From Podarcis bocagei (lineage: Eukaryota), in NCBI GenBank assembly GCA_964188305.1, contig OZ076890.1: a stretch of 64,000 bases of DNA, one strand, 5' to 3'. The position numbers were made by a program, and so were the translations under genes. The notes beneath the pieces were generated by a model, which saw only the letters and a program-made list of their open reading frames with translations, was not told where the DNA came from and did not search any database. Shown here one piece after another: positions 1,022-51,600 of this stretch (the first letter of the stretch is position 1; the number at the start of each line of letters is the position of its first letter).

Positions 1022-1063
1022 CCTGAAGAGAAAAAAGGGTCGGCCCAAGGTATCCAAGCTGTC
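1022..1063 (-). CDS. NMS: NMS exon 9 (DSLDTLGRPFFLFR), core of the mature peptide
   Basis: 42 nt, bounded by tttctttccttttacAG and GTatct. GRPFFLFR is the NMS receptor-binding core; PRN-G is encoded by the next exon, which was not found in the window. Confidence 0.95.
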
Positions 1064-2417: not shown

Positions 2418-2450
2418 CTTCTTCCCGAATTCTGCTGCAAGCTGAGATTC
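2418..2450 (-). CDS. NMS: NMS exon 8 (ESQLAAEFGKK)
   Basis: 33 nt, bounded by ttgcAG and GTaggc. Positional and sequence equivalent of human ...AAVDFTKK. Confidence 0.85.
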
Positions 2451-3378: not shown

Positions 3379-3453
3379 AGGATCAAGGAATCTTTTCATT
3401 CTCCTCTCCGAGAGCTTTGGAGCAAGGCTCATTAAAGGATGCACAGGGAAAGA
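3379..3453 (-). CDS. NMS: NMS exon 7 (SFPVHPLMSLAPKLSERRMKRFLDP)
   Basis: 75 nt, bounded by cAG and GTatgc. Contains the VHPLM..LA.KL..RRMKR motif. Lies within ORF 3286..3498. Confidence 0.95.
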
Positions 3454-4594
3454 CTGTAACAAAGAGAGATCATGAACACCAATTTTATGCAAAGACAAAA
3501 ATTAGAAAAATAAATGTGTAAAGCCTAGATGACAGCTATATGGTTCACTGGCAGAGCGACATTCCTAATCTACCAGTAACATCATCTCAACATAGATGAC
3601 TTTATAAGGAACTGGCTTATTCAAAATATGAAGTCCCAAAATAAGTTTATCAAGAAGTTTCAGATGCAGCCAGAAAACCATCTCTTGGGGGCTTTGCCAG
3701 GATTGTAGAGCAGTGCAGAGGTGCTGGGTAATTAGGAGCAGATCCCTCATGCTGTAATCCTAAATGCACTTGCTAGGCATAAAGCTCCATGGAACTAAGT
3801 GGGGTCTGTTCAGGGCAAACATGCATTGGGTCATAATGTGGTTCAGGACACTTCTTGCCATTGTTTTAATGAAGTGAATAACCATTACTAATTATATATG
3901 TATACACACAGATATGCTAATAATAATAATAATAATTCATAAAGTCGTTGCTAAGGCTTTTTGTGGGTAAAGTCATTCACTAACTGTTCAAAAGAGAGGG
4001 TTGTATTAGGCTAATGGATTTTCATCCCTCTTTGATAGATGGTTCCCATGTTACACTGAAGGGAGTGTGTGCCGTTGGTGGCTGTCTAAAACCCTACTGG
4101 GCTCTTATGAATCTAGTTGCAAGATTTTTTCAGATCCTGGTAACTTCCTCACTGTACATTTAAAGCACTTATACCACTTTGACCATCATGACTTCCCTCA
4201 AAGATTACTGGGAACTGTAAGAGTCCTGAGAGTTGTAAAGACACCCCTCACACAGCTACAGTTCCCATGATTCTTTGGGGAAAGCCTGGACTGTTGAAGA
4301 GGTATGAGAGTGCTTTAACTGTATGGTCCAGATGTGAGATAAATCTTATTTGACGTTATTTGCCTGGCTTAAGGTTCAGCCCGCCCTTTGTGAACTTGAG
4401 TTGCAATCCTATGCACGAGTCCTTTGTAATAAGTGCCATTGGTTTCAATGGGTCTTAATTCCAAGCAGACATGCATAGGTTTGCATTGCTAATAAACACA
4501 CTCAAGGCACTTGAGTGATTTTATATATTGTTCTATAGTATTTTGTATGTTGTAATGTATAAAATATAAAATATGCTTATGTTAAAATACTAAC

Positions 4595-4648
4595 CCCGGT
4601 TTTAAGTGGATATGTTGGATCTTGAGCTCTGGAGTAGTGAAATAAAAA
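4595..4648 (-). CDS. NMS: NMS exon 6 (FLFHYSRAQDPTYPLKTG), N-terminal part of NSRP
   Basis: 54 nt, bounded by cAG and GTtagt. FLFHYS is the hallmark of the NMU/NMS precursor-related peptides. Confidence 0.95.
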
Positions 4649-4734
4649 CTGCACAGAAAGAGCTATTTTAGTATGTTGCATTATTTAAAGAAAAACAGGT
4701 ATTATGCATATTATAAAGAAAGGTAAATACTTAC

Positions 4735-4761
4735 TCTTTTATATATTTCCTGATTATTTTC
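4735..4761 (-). CDS. NMS: NMS exon 5 (ENNQEIYKR)
   Basis: 27 nt, bounded by AG and GTaagt. Matches human DNQDIYKR and ends in a dibasic KR cleavage site. Confidence 0.9.
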
Positions 4762-4863
4762 CTAGTGAGGAGAAGCATATTAGATTACATGAGGATTGAT
4801 GATTACGTAACTACATAAATACTGTAACAGAGTTTTCAGAGAAAAGAAAGAATCGGATCATAC

Positions 4864-4923
4864 CTCATCTATCTGCATGCCATTAAACATGGAGTTACAA
4901 AGATCCATAACAGAACGGCAGAT
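4864..4923 (-). CDS. NMS: NMS exon 4 (ICRSVMDLCNSMFNGMQIDE)
   Basis: 60 nt, phase 0-0, open frame, strong pyrimidine tract ctttttgtcttctAG and GTatga donor. Resembles the Cys-containing propeptide exon of NMU and of non-mammalian NMS. Confidence 0.8.
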
Positions 4924-5623
4924 CTAGAAGACAAAAAGAGCTTAAACTAAATATTGATGTGTTTGAAGCAAATAATAAAAAATAGAGGTAATTATACAAA
5001 CATCAATTTAAAAAATTATTCTAATATACATTATTTTCAAACATAGTTAGTCAAGCATTACATATTTTGCAGTTGTTTTGATATAAAATCACCATGTCTG
5101 ATTGTGGCCGTAAAATTAATTTTTATTTAATTTAGAATGCTGCCGCGAGAGTCAAACAAAACATTAAAAGTGCAACTTCTAACAGATCAAGGTGGTCTAG
5201 TGGGCCCATAAAGGATAAGGTGGGGTTTTTTCAAGTAAACTGGTTCCAAGCTAATGAAGCTTTTATAGACTAATAACAACACTTTGAATTTGGCCTGGTA
5301 ACAAATCAGTGGCCAGTGCGAATGTTTGAGCAGAGACACAATGTGCTGACAGGATCACAGTCCAGAGTCTTTATTTAGTTTGAGTAATGGTGAACTATGA
5401 AACTCCCTGCCACCACAAAGAGATTGCTGTGGCAAAGAGTGATAAGGTATCAGAATAAAATTATGTCAGTCGTGTTTATGTCAAACTCTGCTTCCATCCA
5501 CTGCTCACAACACCTCCATTTTGTGACTGGTGGGCCTTGAACCCTTTCATGTCTGCCCCGGGGATAGAAACTTCGAAAACCCCTAATTTATGGCACTAAA
5601 AATTTATTACAACTTATTTTTAC

Positions 5624-5674
5624 ATGGGGTTGATCAGACAGTTCCATCTACTGACAGAAACACCATGCTAGCCT
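5624..5674 (-). CDS. NMS: NMS exon 3 (RLAWCFCQ*MELSDQPH), with an in-frame TAG at 5650-5648
   Basis: 51 nt, phase 0-0, bounded by tttAG and GTaaaa. Aligns to the recalled human QLAYCLSQWAPLSRQPK, with the stop at the Trp position. Confidence 0.85.
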
Positions 5675-5756
5675 CTAAATCAGAAGTGGAGGGAGTGGGG
5701 TAGAGAAATTGGAAAGTTTATTATATTGGCAACATTTTTGAAGAAAAATATATATA

Positions 5757-5998
5757 CAGTGGTACCTCGGGTTTAGTACTTAATTCATTCCGGAGGTCCG
5801 TTCTTAACCTGAAACTGTTCTTAACCTGAAGCACCACTTTAGCCAATGGGGCCTCCCGCTGCTGCTGCGCTGCTGCTGCGCAATTTCTGTTCTCATCCTG
5901 AAGCAAAGTTCTTAACCCAAGGTACTATTTCTGGGTTAGTGGAGTCTGTAACCTGAAGCGTATGTAACCTGAAGTGTATGTAACCCGAGGTACCACTG
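5757..5998 (+). mobile_element. Tc1/mariner-type MITE (family A)
   Basis: TIR CAGTGGTACCTCGGGTT...AACCCGAGGTACCACTG, flanked by TA. Homologous copies at 43933 and 59334. Confidence 0.9.
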
Positions 5999-6325
5999 TA
6001 TAGTGTCTGAAACAGTACAGGAGAGCAATCCTGAAGCCATTTTGACTCTCCCAAATTCACCTCAAATATTTCGGGAAGTTTATTATACTGGCAACATTCT
6101 TGAAGATTTTCTTTAGCTTATATATACACTAGATTAACAGATTTTGTTCCTACAGTGAACATGGGGATGCAGCAACCAATTGCTTTTGTTACATGCATCA
6201 GGCATATACCAGGCTGTCTTCCCTCTATAATAGCAGTAGAATTCACTGTTCCCATGGGATCTCACACACTTTTGGGATAAGTGTTCCAAGCACAGGCATG
6301 GAAATTTATTTAAAAGTTTGCATAC

Positions 6326-6381
6326 CTTGCTTTTAGGAATGTCTGATTCGCTTAGATAGTCATCAAAGGGCTGTGGAAATC
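6326..6381 (-). CDS. NMS: NMS exon 2 (GFPQPFDDYLSESDIPKSK)
   Basis: 56 nt, bounded by ttaacAG and GTatgc. The GFPQP motif follows the signal peptide as in NMS. Lies within ORF 6134..6418. Confidence 0.92.
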
Positions 6382-7527: not shown

Positions 7528-7600
7528 CTGAGGTGAATCGTGCGGTGCAAACGCAGTAGATAACGAAGATCAAGGGGAAGGGAGGCGCGTGCCGTTTCAT
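7528..7600 (-). CDS. NMS: Neuromedin S precursor, coding exon 1 (signal peptide MKRHAPPFPLIFVIYCVCTARFTS, phase 1)
   Basis: Manual minus-strand translation from the ATG at 7600 (context gaaaATG) to the GTAGGA donor. Resembles the recalled human NMS N-terminus MKHLRPQFPLILAIYCFC. Joins exon 2 in frame. Confidence 0.9.
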
Positions 7601-7699
7601 TTTCAGCGGCCGAGACAGGCTGGGCTTTCTCTGACACAGTTTCTGCATCTTCAGTCCAAGCCCACGAGGCAGCCGCGTTGCTGCCCGGCCTTTGTCTGA

Positions 7700-7770: not shown

Positions 7771-10700
7771 GCAGGCTCCTCGTTTGTCTCATTAAGCGCC
7801 ACGCTGCGCTTTCATTCAGGAAGTAATTGCTCCCTGCTCGGCGCTTGGCGCACAACGATTTCAACTACGCATTAGCCAAGTTTCCGAGAAGAAGAATATA
7901 CAGAACGAACGTTTCTGAAAGATCTTGGGGATGGACGACTAAAGGCGGAAGGAAAATGTCCCTAAAGAAAGCAAGGTAACAGTTGTATATATATTCACCA
8001 TTCTATTGCAAAGTCCCATAAATTCTGCCATGCAGAATTTTTAAAAGTCCTTTATACTCGAAAGCGTTGCAATATGCAACACGCCAGTGCTATAAATCAA
8101 TATGCAGCCCTTTCAGACACATCTCTACTTTAAATAAAATGCGCTGGACATAAAAACCAGTCTCTGTGTAATATCAGTACTCAATTGAAATTCAATAAAG
8201 AATATTAACAGTAAAATGTGTGCCGGATAACAAAAATGCCACCAGTGATCATTCAAAGCTGGTACATAATTATTGATTGTTGAAGTCACTTTTTAAAACT
8301 TATTTTATTTTTTAAAATATATAAAACAACAGGAAGCAAATCATTTTAAATTATTCAAAAGAGGCGGTTCAGAGATGAATGGGAAGGTGTGTGATTTTTG
8401 TACAATTCAACCTCGCTTCTTCCACACCCTCTACACTGTACCCGATACTTTAAGCAACACTTCTGTTTTCTACACCAATACTGTAGAATTTACAGTATAA
8501 TCTCAGATACAGTAAGAAACTTACTTGAAAAATCTGTTCATCCATTTTATGCAGCAGGAGTGGGGACCCATTGGTTCTCCAGCTGTTGTTGAGCTACATT
8601 TTCCGTAATAATCCATGGCCATTGGCCATGCTTGCTAGGGCAGATGGGAGTTGTAGATCATCAATATCTGGCAGGTCAAAAATTCCTCAAACTCGGCTGT
8701 ACAGCTTAGGATCCACTTCCCGGAAGGAATGCTTGATCCTACACCAACCTGACCAGGAACAGAGGTTATGGTGGGTGGTGATCAGTGAGAGAATGTTCTT
8801 TATGTGAAATTCCCTCCCTAGAGAGGTCTACCTGGCACCAACACTGTTTTAATTTCAGTACCAGGCAAATACTTTTGGGTCTCCCAAGCATTTTCATGTA
8901 TTGTTTTCATCTAGTTTTCTTTCTTAACTTGTTATTATATTTTACTTTGTATTTCATCTTGTTGTTATAAACCACTCAGAGTCCTGCTGAAAGGTGGACT
9001 AGACATCTTTTAAATAAATAATATACAAAATATACCTAAATCTTTCTTCAGTCAAGGTTGTACCAATAAACCATTCCTTCTTACGTAAATTGGGACACTG
9101 AGTGATCGAGCCCTCAATAAGTGGTGCCTGTATTGATACCATAACATTTTTTAATATGCTGGACATTACCTAAGCTGGCATATGTCAACTTGGTACAACT
9201 GAGTTACCTAAATGCAATAATTCCATATTGGTTGTAGATCAAACAAGCTATCAATGAATGGAAAGGCAATTTTACATAATGCTTTTATGGTTTAAATCCA
9301 GGGATTACCAACTAGCAGGTCAGGATCTACCAGAAGATCAGAGTGAATCACAGGTCACTATTTAGATTGCCGAAGAACAGAATGCACAATGTACATACAA
9401 GTTGTGCTGGCATCTTGCAAGATACCGATGAGGATTATGAGGGAGAAACTGAATATATAATTGTAGCAGTTTATGATCTGTTAAAGTCCTACCCCCCTTT
9501 TTTTTGCTAGACACAAGATGAATCAAAGTGCTGTGTAAGAGAGTCACCGTGGTGTAGTACTTAGAGTGCTGGATTACAATCTGGGAGATCAGGTTCAAAT
9601 CTCCATTCAGCCATGAAGTCCACTTGGTGATGTTGGATCAGTGACATCAATTGTAATGTGATTACGTGCTCTAGGGTCATGGAATATAGAATAATTCTAC
9701 AGTAGTAGTTCTCAAATTTATTTTATCTTTTGGTAGACCACCACATGAAAATTTCTGGAGGTCTTGGCAGACCACCTGAACTTTTTGTTTTCTTCATCAC
9801 CAGCATTATCATTAAAAAAAAAGCGTTGTATTATGAAAACCAAAAGCCCTAAGGGAAAGATGCTGAAAAGGGTCCTTAAACTGAAAAATTTGTAGTGGAG
9901 AAGAAATAGACCACCACACATATTATGTAAATCATAGGCCTTATGCCAGGGTCTTGTTAGCTTGCTTGGAAAATCCAGTGCTGCTGCCCTTAATCTCCAT
10001 TATTTGGGTGGGGGGGAATAAGTCAGTTTCGTCATTCAAATACAGATTAACCTTTCCATATAGACCACTTGAATGGAACTCGTAGAACACAGTTCTTCTC
10101 TACAGCAGCCTTTGCTACCTGAAGGTGCTGTGTAAGCTGATCTGATTACATCTGGTCCCAGGCATCAAAATAACAGAGTGGGTCCTAAAATATCTATATC
10201 TTAAGTGTCTAAGGTCAGAGTAATGAGATGTGTCTTCAGTATGTGATGCAAACTACATAACGAAGGTCCTCTGTGGGTGCCTTGCCTTTTGCTATCTGCC
10301 TATCTGGATTTTATTAACAACCGGATGTAGCAACCCACTTTACTTCTGCTTTCATACTTTGTGGGACCTGATTCTAGAGGAAAATCGTGATCATTTTGAA
10401 ACCCCTGATAGGGTGCCTCATTTCAGACATAATTTAATGTGCATACACTCAAGAGGAATCATTCCTGGGGCATTTTGTGGATGCAAAATACTGCTTTGAA
10501 ACTGACGCTTTTGTTTTTGATCTTGCTGAACATCCATTAAAAATTAGCTTATGGTTCTTGGAATTTATAAAACCACAATTTAAACAGATAAGACATTTAA
10601 ACTGTTTCCTTTAATCAGAATAGGTTCTTTTCCTCACTTATTCCATTTCAAAGGTGTGTGCTGAGAGTTCAGTATTGTCAATGGCCTCACCAGCACCACA

Positions 10701-29325: not shown

Positions 29326-29506
29326 ATAGTAGAAGCAAAGGATGCCACAAATGGGTTTTCTGCATGAGACCAGTCCAGAGTAATTGTGCTGTATATGCCT
29401 AATTTCATGTTCCTTTAAAATGTGAACTGGAAAATAAAATTCTTCCTTATGCTCTCCTTCCCCCCTCCCTCTCCCCCTCCCTTCTCTTCTCCCATTTTAT
29501 ACCAAG

Positions 29507-29741
29507 ACAATAGGTAGAGGTCTATCTGAAGACATTATACATCAACCTCTGGTCCATATGGAAAGGCTTGAGCTACTCAGGAATGTGTGCCAAGATGCAT
29601 CGCTGAAAAACCTCACTCACACTACTGTTTCAAAATTTGTTTTGGATCGGATATTTGTATGTGACAAGCACAAGATCCTCTTCTGTCAAACTCCAAAAGT
29701 TGGCAATACTCAGTGGAAGAAAGTCTTGATTGTTTTAAATG
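29507..29741 (+). CDS. CHST10: CHST10 coding exon 3 (contains 5'-PSB motif TPKVGNTQWKK)
   Basis: 235 nt encoding TIGRGLSEDIIHQPLVHMERLELLRNVC...KVLIVLN. AAG acceptor after a long pyrimidine tract; donor G|GTATCT. Confidence 0.93.
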
Positions 29742-30230
29742 GTATCTGTTTACTTCTTAAAGCCCCTGACATGTGTGCTTGGTTGGTTAGAGAAAAAAAT
29801 TAACTAGCATAGTATAAAAATAGGTTGTTTCTGTCCACTGATTTATTTATTTTTTATTCCAGCATTTCACTCCCTCTTCTTTTAAACACTTTTTTTAAAC
29901 ACTTCATTCAAAAATAAAAATCCTGAAGTCTTCCGGTACTCACCTTTGCGCCACCTACATAACCTGTGCCAAAACCATGGCAATATGGTTGGTGCACTGC
30001 TATGGTTATTGGGAGCTAATTGCAACCTGAGCTTTAAAATTAAATCTACTTCTGTGCCCAGTACAGCTTAAGCAACAGAATCAAACTATTCCAAACATAA
30101 GATACCATTCCCCCAAAGTTTTAACTAAAGTTTACTGCAATGTCAAATTAGCATTTCAGTTTGACTTCATTTCATTTAAAAAAATATATAGTCCATAGGC
30201 ATTCCTAGGTTAGAATAAAGTTACATAGTT

Positions 30231-30756
30231 CATAGCTGTCAACTTACAGATTTGAAAATAAGGGACCAGCAGCCTCAAAAATAAGGGACCAGCAGCCAAA
30301 ATAAGGGATTTTCCAGGCACAGGTATGTTCAACTTCTGAGCCCCTCCGAGCCAAAGGCAGATAGCCCAGCCAGCAGCCAAACGAAGCCTCAAGCGGTGGT
30401 TCCCACAGCGCAGCAACCCGGCAAAGGGGATACAGCAAGGAAAATCACTGTCACCTCTCCACTGGGAAGTGCTGAGCAAAGGCGAGTCCCCAGACAACGC
30501 GGCCGATTTGATCGGCACAAGGCATGCAAGCTCCACCCCCCAATCGTTCTTAGACTCCTTATTGGGTGAGCAACGCAGCCAAGCAACTCAGTTGGAGCCT
30601 CCCTCCTCCCTGGCCGGCAGGGAGGGAGGGAGGGAGAGGACCTGCTTCCTTTGAAACCCGAAAAATTTAAGGGACATCATCAATAAGGGACAGCAGCGGG
30701 ACACGGCGCTGGGATAAGGGACTTTCCCGCCAAATAAGGGACAGTTGACAGCTATG
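30231..30756. mobile_element. hAT-type MITE (CATAGCTGTCAAC TIR), long form
   Basis: TIRs, repeated subterminal AATAAGGGA motifs and 8-bp TSD ACATAGTT (30223-30230 / 30757-30764). Confidence 0.88.
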
Positions 30757-30776
30757 ACATAGTTATAAAGCTAATA

Positions 30777-31409
30777 CCGTACTTTTCCGTGTATAAGACT
30801 AGGTTTTTTTACTCAAAAATAATGTTAAAAAATGGGGCTCGTCTTATACACAGGCATTGTATTGTTGGGCCGGGTGATTGGTTGCAGCTGCCAGCTGCAG
30901 CTTGTCAGCAGCGATTTGGTGGGTGATTGTTTGCTGCGGCAAGGGCTGCTGTGGATTGGCTGTCGCTGTGGCAATTGGGCGTTCAATTGCCGGCTGCTGT
31001 AGACGAGCAGGCAGACGCTTGTGTGGTGTAGTGGTTAAGAGCGGTGGACTCGTAATCTGGTGAACTGGGTTTGCGTCTCCGCTCCTCCACATGCAGCTGC
31101 TGGGTGACCTTGGGCTAGTCATACTTCTCTGAAGTCTCTCAGCCTCACTCATCTCACAGAGTGTTTGTTGTGGGGGAGGAAGGGAAAGGAGAATGTTAGC
31201 TGCTTTGAGACTCCTTCGGGTAGTGATAAAGCGGGATATCAAATCCAAACTCCTTTTGCGACGTGATCTTTTATGAGCGTTTGCATTCGGATTAGTGAAT
31301 TTCTGCATTCCTCCCCCCACAAAAGCTCTACAACTCTGGGCATTCCCCCCCATTTTCTTAAATTTGAGTCCCCCAAAATAGGGGGCATCTTATACATGGA
31401 AAAGTACAA
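30777..31409. mobile_element. Tc1/mariner-type MITE interrupted by a SINE
   Basis: TA|CCGTACTTTTCCGTGTATAAGAC ... ATCTTATACATGGAAAAGTACAA|TA. Confidence 0.75.
31012..31254 (+). mobile_element. tRNA-derived squamate SINE (Squam3-like), nested in the MITE
   Basis: GTGGTGTAGTGGTTAAGAGC A-box head, GGGTGACCTTGGGCTAGTCA core and an L2-like 3' end. Confidence 0.7.
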
Positions 31410-31477
31410 TAATTTTCTTTCTTTTTTTAAAGAAAGGTAGCTTTCTAAAAATATGTACTAACTTAACTATTCCCCAG

Positions 31478-31583
31478 GAGCTTTTTCTTCCATTGAGGAG
31501 ATCCCAGAGAACATTGTGCATGACCACGAGAAGAATGGTTTGCCACGCTTATCTTCCTTCAGTGACTCAGAAATTCAAGAGCG
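31478..31583 (+). CDS. CHST10: CHST10 coding exon 4 (GAFSSIEEIPENIVHDHEKNGLPRLSSFSDSEIQER)
   Basis: 106 nt, bounded by cccAG and GTaggt. Manual translation, in frame with both neighbours. Confidence 0.95.
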
Positions 31584-31800
31584 GTAGGTGATAAACTTTA
31601 GCTTAACTTGGTGTCTGAACCAAACAGCTGTTTTGTTTTGAAAAGCCACACTTAACCAAATTAAGTGGCGTGTATGAAAAGTAAGCATGCTGAAAGGAAA
31701 GGTAACCCATGTTGACCTAAGGCAGAACCTTTTTTATGCTAACCCAAATGTCACATGATAGTGCACACGCTTTTGAGTGATCCAGAAAGTTATTAGGCTG

Positions 31801-32190
31801 TAGGGCTGGGTAATATCTGGTTTTCAACATCGTGATATATCACCAGCTAGACATCGCGGCATACCAGTATATCGCGATGTCTGAAAGAAGGATGGAGCTA
31901 TGTAGAGGCATTGGCTGTGGCTTCACAGTTTTCCCTGCATCAGGATTTTGCTGGTGCCTGCTCTTGTGATTCACTGCAGGAGGCTGGGGAGAGCTGAGCC
32001 AGCATAGTTTACAGGGGCTGCAGATATTGAGAGAAGCATTGGCTGGCTTCATGGTTTTTTCCACATTGTGATTTTTGCATTTTTGTGTGCTCGCCCCCCC
32101 CCCCCAATGATTCATGACATATTGCCAGGTCAAAAATTCTGAAACCAGTATCACAAAATGGTCTTCAAACCGGTTTTGGATGATAGTTCC
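31801..32190 (+). mobile_element. hAT-like element, partial (TAGGGCTGGG end); a relative with both termini lies at 39517-39773
   Basis: Shares blocks ATATCTGGTTTTCAACAT, GGATGGAGCTA and CCAGGTCAAAA with the 39.5-kb copy. Confidence 0.65.
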
Positions 32191-32242
32191 AAGTTCATTG
32201 AGCCCCTTGATGAGCTTATAAAGTTGTCATCAACCATACCCT

Positions 32243-33032
32243 GTTGTTGTTGTTTAGTGGTTTAGTCATGTGCGACTCTTCGTGACCCCATGCACCAGAG
32301 CATGCCAGGCACTTCTGTCTTCCACTGCCTCCCGCAGTTTGGTCAACCATCTTGTCCTCTGTTGTCCCCTTCTCCTTGTGCCCTCAATCTTTCCCAACAT
32401 CAGGGGTCTTTTCCAGGGAGTCTTCTCTTCTCATGAGGTGGCCAAAGTATTGGAGCCTCAGCTTCAGGATCTGTCCTTCCAGTGAGCACTCGGGGCTGAT
32501 TTCCTTAAGAATGGATAGGTTTGATCTTCTTGCAGTCCATGGGACTCTCAAGAGTCTCCTCCAGCACCATAATTCAAGAGCATCAATTCTTTGGTGATTG
32601 GCCTTCTTTATGGTCCAGCTCTCACTTCCATACATCACTACTGGGAAAACCATAGCTTTAACTATACGGACCTTTGTTGGAAGGTGATGTCTCTGCTTTT
32701 TAAGATGCTGTCTAGGTTTGTCATTGCTCTTTTCCCAAGAAGCAGGCATCTTTTAATTTCATGACTGCTGTTACCATCTGCAGTGATCATGGAGGCCAAG
32801 AAAGTAAAATCTCTCACTGCCTCCATTTCTTCCCCTTCTATTTGCCAGGAGGTGATGGGCCCAGTGGCCATGATCTTCTTTTTTTGATGTTGAGCTTCAG
32901 ACCATAATTTGCACTCTCCTCTTTCACCCTCATTAAAAGGTTCTTTAATTCCTCCTCACTTTCTGCCATCAAGGTTGTTTCTGAGGTTGTTAATATTTCT
33001 TCCGGCAATCTTAATTCCGGCTTGGGATTCAT
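32243..33032 (-). mobile_element. Bov-B (RTE) LINE, 5'-truncated and decayed
   Basis: Frameshifted ORF2 pieces (MAESEEELKNLLMRVKEES; VFPVVMYGSESWTIKK..ELWCWRRLLRVPWTARRSN), a (CAA)n tail and TSD CCATACCCT at 32234-32242 / 33033-33041. Confidence 0.93.
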
Positions 33033-33334
33033 CCATACCCTAGTGTTCTTAAAATGACAGTTTTGTAGAGCAGCAAGGATTCATCTTGAAGAAGTGTGGG
33101 TGGCTGTTGGTGCTGGCTGATTCTACATCTCTGGAAATACAAAAAAACAAAAACCTTTCTCTGTTTGTAGGCTAAACATTTCATTTAGGTAAAACATAAG
33201 AGCCAAATGTTCTGAGTCTCAGGGCTGGTTCATTCACACCTGTACATCAGTTGTTTTCTCATTGCTTGGTAACTTGAAGAATGCATGGACAGACTTTCGG
33301 TGCGTATGGCTACTACCGCTATGCTGTTGCATTC

Positions 33335-33702
33335 GGGACATGGATGGCACTGCGGTCTAAACCACTGAGGCTCTTGAGCTTGCCGATCGTAAGGTTTGCA
33401 GTTTGAATCCGTGCAATGGGGTGAGCTCCTGTTGCTTTGTCCCAGCTCCTGTCAACTTAGCAGTTCTAAAGAATACCAGTGTGAGTAGATAAATAGGTAC
33501 CGCTGCGGCGGGAAGGTAGACAATGTTTCTGTGTGACCTGGCTTCCGTCACGGTGTCCTGTTGCACCAGGAATGGTTTTGTCATGCTGGCTACATGACCC
33601 GGAAAGCTGTCTGTAGAAAAATACCAGTTCCCTCAGCCTGAAAGCAGAGATGAGCACCGCACCCCATAGTCGAATTCAACTGGACTTAACCGTCCAGGGG
33701 TC
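33335..33702 (+). mobile_element. Sauria SINE, divergent subfamily, tail-less
   Basis: Homologous to the other copies but with an extra internal segment; perfect 13-bp TSD TGCTGTTGCATTC. Confidence 0.85.
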
Positions 33703-33873
33703 TGCTGTTGCATTCACACATGCAAGTTACCATTTGCTGCTGCAGCCATCAAGTGAGGAACATGCATGTGTGGACCATTGCTTATTTTATTTAGCTTTGT
33801 GAATTTCCAGCAGATAACAAATTCTTAAAATTGCCACATACAACTTGTTTCCTCTTTTTCTTACCTATTTCAG

Positions 33874-34411
33874 GCTGAAATTATACTTCAAGTTCCTTAT
33901 CGTAAGAGATCCGTTCGAGAGGCTTATTTCTGCATTCAAAGACAAGTTTGTCCGCAATCCTCGTTTTGAACCTTGGTATAGGCATGAAATTGCTCCCGGC
34001 ATCATTCGAAAATATAGAAAGAATCGCACTGAGACCAGGGGGCTGCAGTTTGAGGACTTCGTGCGCTACTTGGGTGATCCAAATCATCGGTGGCTAGATA
34101 TACAATTTGGAGACCGCATCATTCATTGGGTGACCTATGTGGAACTTTGTGCCCCCTGTGAAATAACATACAGTGTAATTGGACATCATGAAAGCTTGGA
34201 AGAGGATGCACCATACATCTTGAAGGAAGCTGGAATAGACCATCTGGTGTCTTATCCTACTATTCCGCCGGGGATAACACTGTATAACAAAACTAAGGTG
34301 GAACGCTATTTCTCGGGAGTTAGCAAGAGAGACATCCGCCGCCTTTATGCCCGTTTTGAAGGTGATTTTAATCTTTTTGGCTACCCAGAGCCAGATTTCC
34401 TACTCAACTGA
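33874..34411 (+). CDS. CHST10: CHST10 final coding exon (3'-PB motif RDPFERLISAF; ends PDFLLN*)
   Basis: ORF 33845..34411 trimmed to the tttcAG acceptor. Exon total 100+98+235+106+538 = 1077 nt = 358 aa plus stop. Confidence 0.97.
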
Positions 34412-47149: not shown

Positions 47150-47849
47150 ACAAAAGGGAGCATCGCAAATGCGGAGCTGCCGGCTTAAAAATGAGAGTCA
47201 CGGCCACACGGTTCGCCCTAGTTCTCCTTTGTGGAGAACTGAAAGCCGCCCCTCTCCACGCAGAACTGTGGCTGAAGCAAGGCGGAGACGCAGCCAGTTT
47301 GGAGAGGAACAGAAAACCAGCCGCGCCGCCGCTTCCCGGAAGCCTGCGAGGCGCTGGCCGGCCTCTCCCCCGTCACACACACGTGCGCTGCGGGCGGAGC
47401 GGCTGTCGGAGGGCATGTGCGCTCGGCTCACCAGGCCGGGGACTGGGGCGGGCGCTCGGCGGGGCGGTGCTGCCCTCAGCCGGGGAGAAGGAGTTATACA
47501 ACCGCTCGGCGTTGCATAAGCGCCTGAGCCCGGAATAGTCTCAGCTGCCTGCTGGCGCGCTCCGGGAGTGGGGCCAGCGCCGCCCTGCTCTCCTCCCCTT
47601 GACCCCGACGCGCTCGCTCTCCTCGGGGGACGCCCCAGACGGAGCTGGCGGCGCGCCTCCCCCCCCTTTCATAACGGCGTCCGTCCCAGCCCTGGCGGCC
47701 ACCAGGCTCCTTGAGCAAGGCGCGGCGGCTGCGAGGGGCCGCCTCCCCGCTTTTCTGCTCCTCGATGAGGCGCTGAGCTCGACGATGAAGCCATAGCAGG
47801 AGCGCTCGCCGCCACCACCACACCCACCCAGTCAGCCAACCCGGCGAAA
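47150..47849 (+). promoter_or_regulatory. LONRF2: CpG-island promoter and 5' UTR of LONRF2
   Basis: GC/CpG-rich, with GC boxes at about 47445-47467, a CACGTG E-box at 47380-47385 and a TATA-like TTATAC at about 47494. Confidence 0.75.
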
Positions 47850-48624
47850 ATGGAGCTGGGGGCCGCGCTCGGGCAGCAGGCGCAGCAGCGCGCCCACCAC
47901 CAGCAGGCCCCGTCGGCGGCAGGAGGAGGAGGAGGAGGCGGCGGCGGTCCCTGCGCGGAGATGTTGCAAGTGGCCGAGGAGGCTTTCCGAGGCGGGCAGT
48001 TCGCCCTGGCGGCGGAGATCCTGAGCTCGCAGCTGGCCGAGCTGGCGCAGCCCGAGCGGGGCCTTTGCCTCCGCCAAGGGGACGCGCTGGCCCGCGCGGG
48101 GCGCATGGCCGAGGCTTTGGATGCTTACAGTGCCGCCGCCAGGCTGGCCCGCCTGAGGCCCGAGGAGCTGCGCGAACTGGCCGAGAGCTTCGCGCTCAGC
48201 CTCCGCGACAAAGAGCTGCGCCTGCCGCCGTGGCGGGGGCCTGGCGGCGGCGGCGCAGCTCCGGAGGGAGACGACCCGCTGGCGGACCCGCCTTGCTGCC
48301 GACCCCCGGAGCCGCTGGGCTGCCCGATGTGCCGTCGTCTGCTCTGCGAGCCGGTGACTCTGCACTGCGGGCACACCCACTGCAAGCGCTGCGCCCAGAG
48401 CGGCGGAGGCGAGTGCGCCCGCTGCGCCGCCCGGCGCCCAGCCTCTGCCCCGGCCGCGCAGCCCCCCGCCGGTCTCCGCGTCAACGTGGTCTTGGGCAGC
48501 CTGCTGGAGAAGTGGTTCCCGGCCGAGAGCAAAGCGCGCCGGCTGGGCGCCGAAGGGGACGCGCTGAAGGAGAGGCAGGAGCTGGCGCCCGCCCTGGAGA
48601 AGTACAACCAGGCCCTGGACCTCG
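47850..48624 (+). CDS. LONRF2: LON peptidase N-terminal domain and RING finger protein 2, coding exon 1 (poly-Gly9, TPR-like helices, first RING)
   Basis: LAQPERGLCLRQGDALARAGR..LRPEEL and the RING CPMC..PVTLHCGHTHCKRC..CARC are LONRF features. Donor G|GTGAGT (phase 1). Position downstream of CHST10 supports the LONRF2 paralogue. Exon 2 was not found in the window. Confidence 0.92.
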
Positions 48625-51600
48625 GTGAGTGCTCGCCGTGGCGCACATGCCCGACTCCTCCCCACAGAAGAAAGCTTCCCTGTCGCCTTCGGAAGCAGCA
48701 AGGGCAAACACCTTGTCAATATGCTCGGGGGCGCTGCGCCACAACCCCGACCTGTGTTGCTTTGGCTCACAAGGGGAGAAACAGGCCCAGTCGCGTTCCT
48801 GAGCTCCCTTCCTTATGTGGGAAGCGGATTAGGGATTTCCCGACGGGGAGAAAGCGCAGTGTAATGGGGGCCATTTCCAGGAGTGGGTGTTCCTGCCAAC
48901 GCTGGGCAGCCAGGCCTTGCCTGATACATGGATGAGAAGGAATTCGACAATAAGGGGCCCCTTCTCAACACCTGGGTGGAAAGTGCGTTGTGGCGCTTTC
49001 TGCTCTGCCTGGTGTTTTTTGCAAACTATATGTGAAGTGTAGAAAGTAGGAGGAAGTGTGTCACTTTCTAAAAAAAGAACCCCCCCCCCACTAAGCTTGT
49101 GCTTCCTGGCACTGTGCAATTGGGGATCCCAATATTCTGTTGGGAGGCGCCCCCCTCCCAACTGTTGCAGTTTGTGAAGGAGAACAGGAATCTGTTCAGT
49201 TCTTACAAACTGCTATGTGATCGTGCTTGGGCTGTGTGACAGCCCAATGGTGAAATGATTTCTAGGGGTCAGAAGGGTCTGCGACATAGGCACAGTTGTG
49301 TTTCGGTGCTTGGAAGGCATGTGTATTGGGGCAATAGGCTGTGGAGTTTGGGTAAAGGGTTAATTTGACTTCTCAAGTTATGTGGGAAATGAATTCTGTT
49401 TAGGTGGGTTCCAGCTGCCTTGCCCATTCAGTAAAAAAAAACTGGGTTTTTGTTAACATTGACCAGAAGCAGCCATGGGGTTTATTAGAATGAGGTATGG
49501 TGTGCTCTTGAGGGCTGGCAGTTACAGCCCCAGGATGCTTCCCAGCTGATGCCAGGGCAGGGGTGAGAGCAAATACTGAGAATAGTCGACCTCAGAACAC
49601 ATATTGTATCTTCTGTGCATTGCTTTGTGGAGAATGTTAAGGGCCTTTGCAACTGCGAGAAATCGAGATTTTCATCTGGGAGTTAGAAAAGTTCATACCC
49701 CACATGGTTTTCTCAATCCTGGTGCCTTGTGGCTCAGATTTCTGCTCAAGAGCTTCAAATTAGCTTTCCTGTTCTCTGGCACAACTAAAGCCACTTATTT
49801 TGTATTGGTTTCTGACTTCCATTTGACGGGTCAGGCACCAGTAAGAAAACAGCTTTATGGGAAATAATTCTAGAGAGTTTTTAAATTGTATAATAGTGAA
49901 AGTTGAAACGTAATTGTAGCCTAGGCGTGACAATGCTTTGTGACATTGTCAACACAGAGGTTTGTGGGGCTTTGAGCATCTTGGAAACTCAGAAAGGGTG
50001 TAAGGTGTGCACCTGAAGATACGAGCAAATCCTTCCTTGTCACATACCTTTTCTAATGCAGCAATACATCTTCATCTACTGCCCTGCCAGTACCCAGTAG
50101 GTACATACTATTTTCACTGCCAGCCTTTTGACTAGCCACAAAATAGCTGGGAATATATAAGATGACACTTCCTGCTTGGCAGAATCTCTAAAACATGTGC
50201 AGTGTGGGTTAAGGTCATTGCCAATTGTCTTTACCCAAACCTTGGGAAATTAATAAATGACTTTTCTTACCTCAGGGACTTCCTTACAATTCAAAGCAAA
50301 ACTTGCAGCAGCTACTGTATCCACAGAACTTATGGATACGCAGTTGGGCACCCTGCAGATTATCTGTGTGTTGTTCATTTGTTCATGGTGGGAGATGGAG
50401 GACTTATTTTTTAAAAAAACAAAGAATTTACAACGTTCCATTTTCATCTACAAATTAGCGAGAATTTGGGAATAGATTCTGTGTATTTGCTGGGAGCAAC
50501 AGCAGAATTGCATAATATTGTTTCCCTGAATACTCATCATTACAACACAGTGTAAGAGAGTGTGACTTCTCTAAACACATTCGGAACCTTATACCTAAGA
50601 TGTTGACATGCTTACTGTGAGACCACCAGAACTGATTGCATAATATAGATGGATTTCAAAACCTTTTTGCTATCTATGTGACTAAGAAAAGGAAGCCATG
50701 TCTCCAGAAACATCAAATAGGTGCATTTGGACAGGCAGAGTGAAAGTTTCACTGTTGCTGGTTGTTGTTAAAATTTCAGAAATATGGGTGTGTGTGAATT
50801 ATTACATGAATCAGAGGGTCTGGAACACTCTGGAATGCTATAGTTCCAGGTTTGGCTGTGTATGCTTGATGTAGTGTAAATTTTCACAGGTCATCCTGAC
50901 CTTTTGAAATGCCAGTAGGGAGGCGTACTGTTGGTTCTCTTCTGATAGGCTGTTTCAAAGTTTTTGGAGCTGGGCCTTTCTTGGTGACTTCAATGGGCTG
51001 GGAACTGAGCTTGTATATAGGGAAATATGTTTTTCCTTCCTTTTTCAGTCGTTATTTTGCTATCGTTACATGCAACTGTTTAGACATAACAAACGAAAAC
51101 CTTCCCAAGTAGAGCAGGTGTTGGCAACCTTCGGCTCTGCAGATGTTGCTGACCTCTGCAGCTCCCATCATTCTTGACCATTGGCTGTGCTTACTGGGAC
51201 CAATGGGTGTTGTAGTTCAGCAACATTTGGACGGCCAGAGGCTTCCCATACCTGTAATAATAGAGAGAACCATTGGAGCTGAAATTGTCTTCCTTTTGTC
51301 ATGTCAAGCAGCAAAACTACATTTGTTTCATGCCTCATTGTTTCATTGGAAAACACATCCTGATATGAGGAAAGTTTCTGTAATTGTACGTTTCTGCATC
51401 TTGAATTATCTCTTTATTGTGATACCAAAGTGCCCTCTTTTTAACCCAGTAAAACAAATCAGTGGAATTGATTTACCTAGCTGTGCCTCCTTTGTCATTG
51501 TCAACTTAACCATGGAGAAGTTCTTTCTCTCGCAAGCGTTAAAGCAATGCTGCATTTTTCAGTTTTGTAATGAGTTGTGGGGTTGTTTTTTTTAAGAATA

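Follow-up and report, generated by a model that had tools for sequence, protein, structure and literature searches.

A stop codon in exon 3 of the neuromedin S gene of Podarcis bocagei, a probable dead and skipped exon of lacertid lizards

The stretch of DNA analysed here, called the window, spans 64,000 nucleotides of contig OZ076890.1 from Podarcis bocagei (assembly GCA_964188305.1). It carries on the minus strand a gene that an earlier note, made from the sequence alone, took for neuromedin S (NMS). One small exon of this gene, exon 3, contains an in-frame stop codon upstream of both peptide regions. Has this lizard lost a circadian and feeding neuropeptide, is the stop an error of the assembly, or is the codon bypassed by splicing? 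All three options had been left standing by the note.

Structure and identity of the gene

The NMS exons in the window are as follows.

7528-7600, minus strand: coding part of exon 1, MKRHAPPFPLIFVIYCVCTARFTS, ending in phase 1
6326-6381, minus strand: exon 2, GFPQPFDDYLSESDIPKSK, donor AAG/gtatgc, ending in phase 0
5624-5674, minus strand: exon 3, a putative relic, orthologue of the RLALCFSQWTELSDQPQ exon in other squamates, omitted from all lacertid models
4864-4923, minus strand: exon 4, ICRSVMDLCNSMFNGMQIDE, phase 0-0, following exon 2 directly in lacertid models
4735-4761, minus strand: exon 5, ENNQEIYKR, with a dibasic site
4595-4648, minus strand: exon 6, FLFHYSRAQDPTYPLKTG
3379-3453, minus strand: exon 7, SFPVHPLMSLAPKLSERRMKRFLDP
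2418-2450, minus strand: exon 8, ESQLAAEFGKK, one Glu codon fewer than in other lacertids (in-frame deletion)
1022-1063, minus strand: exon 9, DSLDTLGRPFFLFR, core of the mature peptide, containing GRPFFLFR

The eight exons other than exon 3 all have open frames and AG/GT borders, and the KR, RRMKR and KK cleavage sites are present, as the earlier note had described. An in-frame ATG located at 7648, upstream of that at 7600, is the start in the RefSeq models of relatives, 16 codons earlier. Exon 10 (PRNGR...) falls outside the window, about 545 nt beyond position 1 as judged by collinearity with P. raffonei. The PRNGR end, which is the amidation signal, is intact in P. muralis and P. raffonei; the window covers only the GRPFFLFR part.

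Sequence comparisons assign the gene to the NMU/NMS family, as a neuromedin S precursor. A 30-residue piece around exon 7 gave three neuromedin-S matches in an exhaustive search (Lacerta agilis, Crotalus adamanteus, Caretta caretta), and 50 NMS proteins of lizards, snakes, turtles, amphibians and mammals were collected by a word search started from the Lacerta protein. Every exon in the window aligns to the NMS genes of P. muralis and P. raffonei. The RefSeq NMS entries of P. muralis (XP_077783718.1), P. raffonei (XP_053240179.1) and L. agilis (XP_033001760.1) represent the same gene with the same exon set, and the window is 93-95% identical to these lacertid loci at the DNA level (BLAST). The precursor layout is also that of NMS in Hemicordylus capensis (X1), Sceloporus undulatus (X1), Eublepharis macularius, turtles, newt and primates, and includes in all a signal peptide, GFPQP, the FLFHYSR peptide region, RRMKR, KK and GRPFFLFRPRNGR. 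Single-exon pieces gave no match to the Pfam NMU domain, a result expected for fragments of 14-25 residues that lack the PRN end, and hence uninformative. In a word search, a 98-residue open stretch around exon 2 had no words in common with any candidate, although the proteins identified afterwards do contain them.

Two further genes are found on the plus strand of the window. Exons of a Sulfotransfer_2 gene, CHST10-like, lie at 29438-34408 (29.4-34.4 kb), and a LONRF-like first exon, rich in GC and matching RING and TPR domains, at 47769-48932 (47.8-48.9 kb). In human, NMS is located head-to-head with CHST10, followed by LONRF2. By family names, the neighbours in the window would fit this order.

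The stop codon and the ancestral exon

Exon 3 is 51 nt long, in phase 0-0, and reads AGG CTA GCA TGG TGT TTC TGT CAG TAG ATG GAA CTG TCT GAT CAA CCC CAT. It is bordered by gatttag on the acceptor side and gtaaaa on the donor side, corresponding to an AG acceptor and a GTAAAA donor, and its translation is RLAWCFCQ, stop, MELSDQPH. Length, phase, borders and stop are all as the earlier note had them, the stop being codon 52 when numbered from the ATG at 7600. Two features matter for what follows.

5648-5650, minus strand: in-frame TAG at the site of an invariant Trp, TGG in outgroups and TAT in Lacerta agilis
5618-5624, minus strand: crippled donor of exon 3, T/gtaaaa, compared with G/gtaaa in outgroups

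The TAG is genuine DNA and not an assembly error. Run X3, from another sample and another study, represents a second P. bocagei individual, and one of its contigs, 1241 nt long, spans 4539-5779. This contig differs from the window at six positions (4598, 4828, 5319, 5360, 5444 and 5598), and is identical to it at 5648-5650. The same TAG is present in the genome assemblies of P. raffonei and P. muralis. In two related species (runs X9 and X11) the contigs end close to the high-copy repeat beside exon 3, and none of the listed pieces reaches 5649. Because the second individual matches the window and the assemblies of two other species carry the codon, an assembly or sequencing error at 5649, one of the options of the earlier note, is refuted. 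Only the general prior that single-base errors occur speaks for it, and its probability is practically nil. One of the six differences, at 4598, falls in exon 6, and is a synonymous G>A change (ACC>ACT, Thr) in the second individual, to be regarded as ordinary polymorphism.

The codon interrupted by the stop is deeply conserved. All 44 non-lacertid NMS proteins bearing the C[FL]SQ motif continue with W, and the statement in the earlier note that orthologues have Trp at this position is borne out also at the DNA level. The genomes of the three outgroups analysed (H. capensis, S. undulatus and E. macularius) have a 51-nt exon in the corresponding position, with the translation RLALCFSQW(T/I)E..., TGG as the ninth codon and CAG/gtaaa at the exon end. 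Exon 3 accounts for 17 residues of the pro-region, which are near-invariant from newts to primates. Non-lacertids retain the 17-residue exon, the invariant Trp and the CAG/gtaaa donor; lacertids do not. The three outgroup genomes and the protein alignment both identify exon 3 of the window as the orthologue of the outgroup coding exon, and settle in the affirmative the question of orthology that the earlier note had raised.

Gene models skipping exon 3 are not confined to lacertids. They are found also in Salvator merianae (tegu), Natator depressus (flatback turtle), Equus quagga and Erethizon dorsatum (porcupine). The exon is therefore dispensable elsewhere too, and seems to be labile in several lineages. 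Models of Equus asinus feature an altered exon 3.

Decay of exon 3 and constraint on the other exons

The comparison covered four lacertids, represented by the window and by the genomes of P. raffonei, P. muralis and L. agilis. Four amino acid replacements in exon 3 (L>W, S>C, T>M and Q>H) are common to all. The last one results from a G>T change at the last base of the exon, corresponding to position -1 of the donor, where the four lacertids have T and the three outgroups G. The codon of the invariant Trp, which the earlier note had suggested be looked at in other lacertid assemblies, is TAG in the window, P. raffonei and P. muralis, and TAT in L. agilis. In P. muralis exon 3 has suffered a further loss of 6 nt, and the GT of the donor is replaced by GC. 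The acceptor and the polypyrimidine tract are still perfect in all four. Amino acid changes assigned to the lacertid stem, counted by eye, hit 5 of the 17 residues of exon 3 and 8 of 129 elsewhere (Fisher p = 0.0085).

The shortest history of the codon has TGG changed to TAG before the split of Lacerta and Podarcis, and TAG subsequently changed to TAT in Lacerta. An independent change in two steps in Lacerta is an alternative compatible with the same data. By these comparisons the decay of exon 3 predates the Lacerta/Podarcis split; the TAG is not recent, and a null allele is not supported.

The earlier note had remarked on the weakness of the GTAAAA donor. The remark is apt. By a rough position-weight estimate, exons 7 and 9 have donors that look about equally weak, and a weak donor was accordingly discarded as a peculiarity of exon 3. 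The informative feature is not GTAAAA as such but the lineage-specific G>T at position -1, which sets the four lacertids apart from the outgroups and is the decisive change.

Total exon and intron rates were compared, as the 3-12 differences found per pair are too few for dN/dS. Counting substitutions only, introns diverge by 3.9-7.1% in pairwise comparisons among lacertids. The other eight exons in the window diverge by 0.7-2.8% (one-sided binomial p 1.5e-3 to 1e-6), and feature no frameshift, stop or loss of splice sites in any of the four lacertids. The rates point to clear constraint on these exons. Exon 3 diverges by 3.9-6.7% in five of the six lacertid pairs and is indistinguishable from introns, the comparison having little power alone at 51 nt (Fisher p 0.08-0.2 per pair).

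These data bear directly on the view, listed first in the earlier note, that the stop marks a recent null allele or a young unitary pseudogene, with exon 3 constitutive, both peptides abolished by the TAG, and the gene decaying. The position of the stop, upstream of both peptide regions and in an exon with a coding role in other squamates, is what such a view would have. However, the TAG is common to three Podarcis lineages that are about 4% apart at neutral sites, the decay of the exon is older than the split from Lacerta, and the other exons keep frames, splice sites and cleavage sites, changing three to six times more slowly than introns. Moreover, full precursors lacking exon 3 are encoded by gene models in four lacertid species. 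The view is disfavoured on these grounds, and is held to be highly improbable. As in unitary pseudogenes, an in-frame stop interrupts sequence that codes for protein in relatives. Unlike in these, the remaining exons of the window are intact and constrained, and full-length models exist; the features that define a unitary pseudogene are absent.

Skipping of exon 3 in gene models, RNA data and a possible mechanism

In all 21 lacertid NMS proteins (L. agilis isoforms X1-X3, P. muralis in two annotation releases, P. raffonei isoforms X1-X5, and two of P. lilfordi) the sequence ...DIPKSK runs straight into IC(R/H)SVMDLCNSMF..., corresponding to the junction, in frame, of exon 2 to exon 4. Skipping preserves the frame, exon 3 being 51 nt long, exon 2 ending in phase 0 and exon 4 beginning in phase 0. 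Compared with P. muralis X1, the precursor that the window would encode without exon 3 has two residues changed and one Glu missing. Skipping in the Podarcis models could be a necessity of modelling, since RefSeq models bar in-frame stops. Exon 3 is, however, absent even from the models of L. agilis, where it is open; this is an indirect sign that the skip reflects transcripts, and not only the avoidance of a stop.

In the single-cell RNA run X21, from the species of the window, about two 90-nt reads each were found on exon 6 and exon 8, on the strand of the gene and with no junction listed, suggesting that NMS is transcribed in the tissue sampled. At exon 3 the run offers nothing interpretable, as a high-copy repeat reaches into the bin with its edge and contaminates it. 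X21 coverage amounts exactly to the lengths of exons 6 and 8 (54 and 33 nt out of the 90 nt of a read), and exon 7 is empty. The reads fit an isoform skipping exon 7, like P. muralis X4, and are too few for a junction to be listed. As for the L. agilis models, the genome hosts an intact exon 9 (8597-8638 of the L. agilis sequence; DSLDTLGRPFFLFR), yet all three RefSeq isoforms end earlier, since the donor of either exon 7 or exon 8 is read through. The L. agilis RefSeq NMS models look truncated.

Taken together, these data make it probable that in Lacertidae exon 3 is dead and skipped, that the TAG lies outside the working frame, and that the gene works. Of the options of the earlier note, the bypass of the stop by skipping of a frame-neutral exon is therefore the one favoured. 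The features found at the locus are those of a dead cassette exon, and include orthology to an outgroup exon, frame-neutral skipping, a donor lesion extended to the whole clade, and divergence at the rate of introns. Within the sample seen, including Lacerta and Podarcis, the loss appears to be family-wide. Some inclusion of exon 3 is possible, given the perfect acceptor and polypyrimidine tract.

A plausible course of events may be outlined from the rules of splice sites. Donor sites pair with U1 snRNA, and position +5 is usually G. The ancestral donor of exon 3, CAG/GTAAA(A/G), is without the usual +5 G, and leaned on the exon side because this G is missing; the lacertid donor is CAT/GTAAAA. 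In the lacertid lineage the last base of exon 3 would have changed from G to T. By textbook rules the uninterrupted match to U1 snRNA, seven base pairs long (-3 to +4), would have shrunk to four, and the spliceosome would have joined exon 2 to exon 4, the frame being kept because exon 3 measures 51 nt and is in phase 0-0. The resulting product would retain the signal peptide, all the cleavage sites and both peptide regions. Exon 3, once unused, would have been free to drift, accumulating the four shared replacements and the TGG>TAG change (TAT in Lacerta), and decay would have proceeded later in P. muralis with the 6-nt deletion and GT>GC. Both the constitutive skipping in the window species and the role of the -1 G>T as its cause are what we infer from these data.

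Two other ways in which exon 3 might still be used have been considered. It may be a poison exon, included in part of the transcripts, which would end at the TAG and be degraded or give a 51-residue stub, lowering NMS output. A low level of inclusion is compatible with the RNA data seen, and acceptor, polypyrimidine tract and exon length are kept in the window, P. raffonei and L. agilis. There is, however, no sign of a conserved poison function in a set of species where P. muralis is without a GT donor and 6 nt, and L. agilis is without the stop. The exon moreover evolves at the rate of introns, and is found in none of the 21 lacertid models. A poison exon is accordingly regarded as unlikely.

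Alternatively, the gene may rescue itself by means of the CAGTAG motif, a tandem acceptor of the NAGNAG type. If the AG within the stop served as acceptor, the exon would shrink to 24 nt, encode MELSDQPH and stay in frame. The sequence CAGTAG is found in the window, with a pyrimidine-rich stretch in front and the next codon in phase, and also in P. raffonei. In L. agilis, however, it is replaced by CAGTAT, with no second AG, and in P. muralis the deletion falls right behind the motif and the donor is GC. Strong AGs are present upstream, at the regular acceptor, and the same crippled donor would still be required. None of the lacertid models contains KSKM, MELS or MSEQ. This rescue is deemed most improbable.

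The preferred reading, that of a dead and skipped exon, finds a close parallel in the loss of symmetrical cassette exons by mutation of the 5' splice site, with which the locus shares the frame-neutral length and the clade-wide donor lesion. It shares as well the later neutral decay, including a stop, in a gene otherwise constrained; in the present case the -1 G>T is the presumed cause. In these terms exon 3 is a relic carried by a functional gene, and its loss is of an ordinary kind, though neat. Its omission is already reflected in public annotation. The lacertid RefSeq records leave out exon 3 with no visible mention of the decayed, stop-bearing copy in intron 2, and no paper describing the loss of NMS exon 3 was found in a literature search.

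If exon 3 is dead and skipped, a false alarm is removed, as the lizard would not have lost its circadian and feeding neuropeptide. The locus would also provide a cleanly datable case of the death of a small, deeply conserved exon, with a legible order of decay: G>T at the donor, dropping of the exon, stop in Podarcis, deletion and donor loss in P. muralis, second hit in Lacerta. A part of the NMS pro-region that is invariant from amphibians to primates would yet be dispensable in at least one large family of lizards. For annotation, the lesson is that an in-frame stop in a homologous symmetrical exon need not mean a pseudogene.

The loss may on the other hand not have been neutral. A role of the pro-region dependent on disulfides could have been rescued by a Cys of exon 4, or the relic, carrying a stop and being regulated, could tune NMS output in Podarcis. 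We hold either with little confidence.

Minor features were observed near exon 3. Intron 2 is 651 nt long in the window, and its length in P. raffonei, P. muralis and L. agilis is 261-295 nt. The additional sequence (5745-6073, core 5757-5999) contains an element of about 243 bp with perfect 17-nt terminal inverted repeats (CAGTGGTACCTCGGGTT) and TA-rich flanks. In three lizard DNA runs the summed word depth of this element reaches the millions. The element has no match in Rfam. It resembles a MITE that has inserted some 80 nt ahead of the acceptor of the dead exon.

Two more observations concern exons downstream. The Glu codon missing in exon 8 of the window is missing also in the second individual (run X3), both reading AAEFGKK, as against AAEEFGKK in P. 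raffonei, P. muralis and L. agilis. This deletion, specific to the lineage of the window, leaves the frame intact. Run X9 (organism E) features a 3-nt insertion relative to the window at the same site. At the start of exon 4 (4917-4920) lacertids have ICR or ICH, compared with ISS, ISG or ISN in all other tetrapods with exon 4. This Cys was gained in the lineage losing the Cys of exon 3 (LALCFSQW), and the pro-region keeps two Cys.
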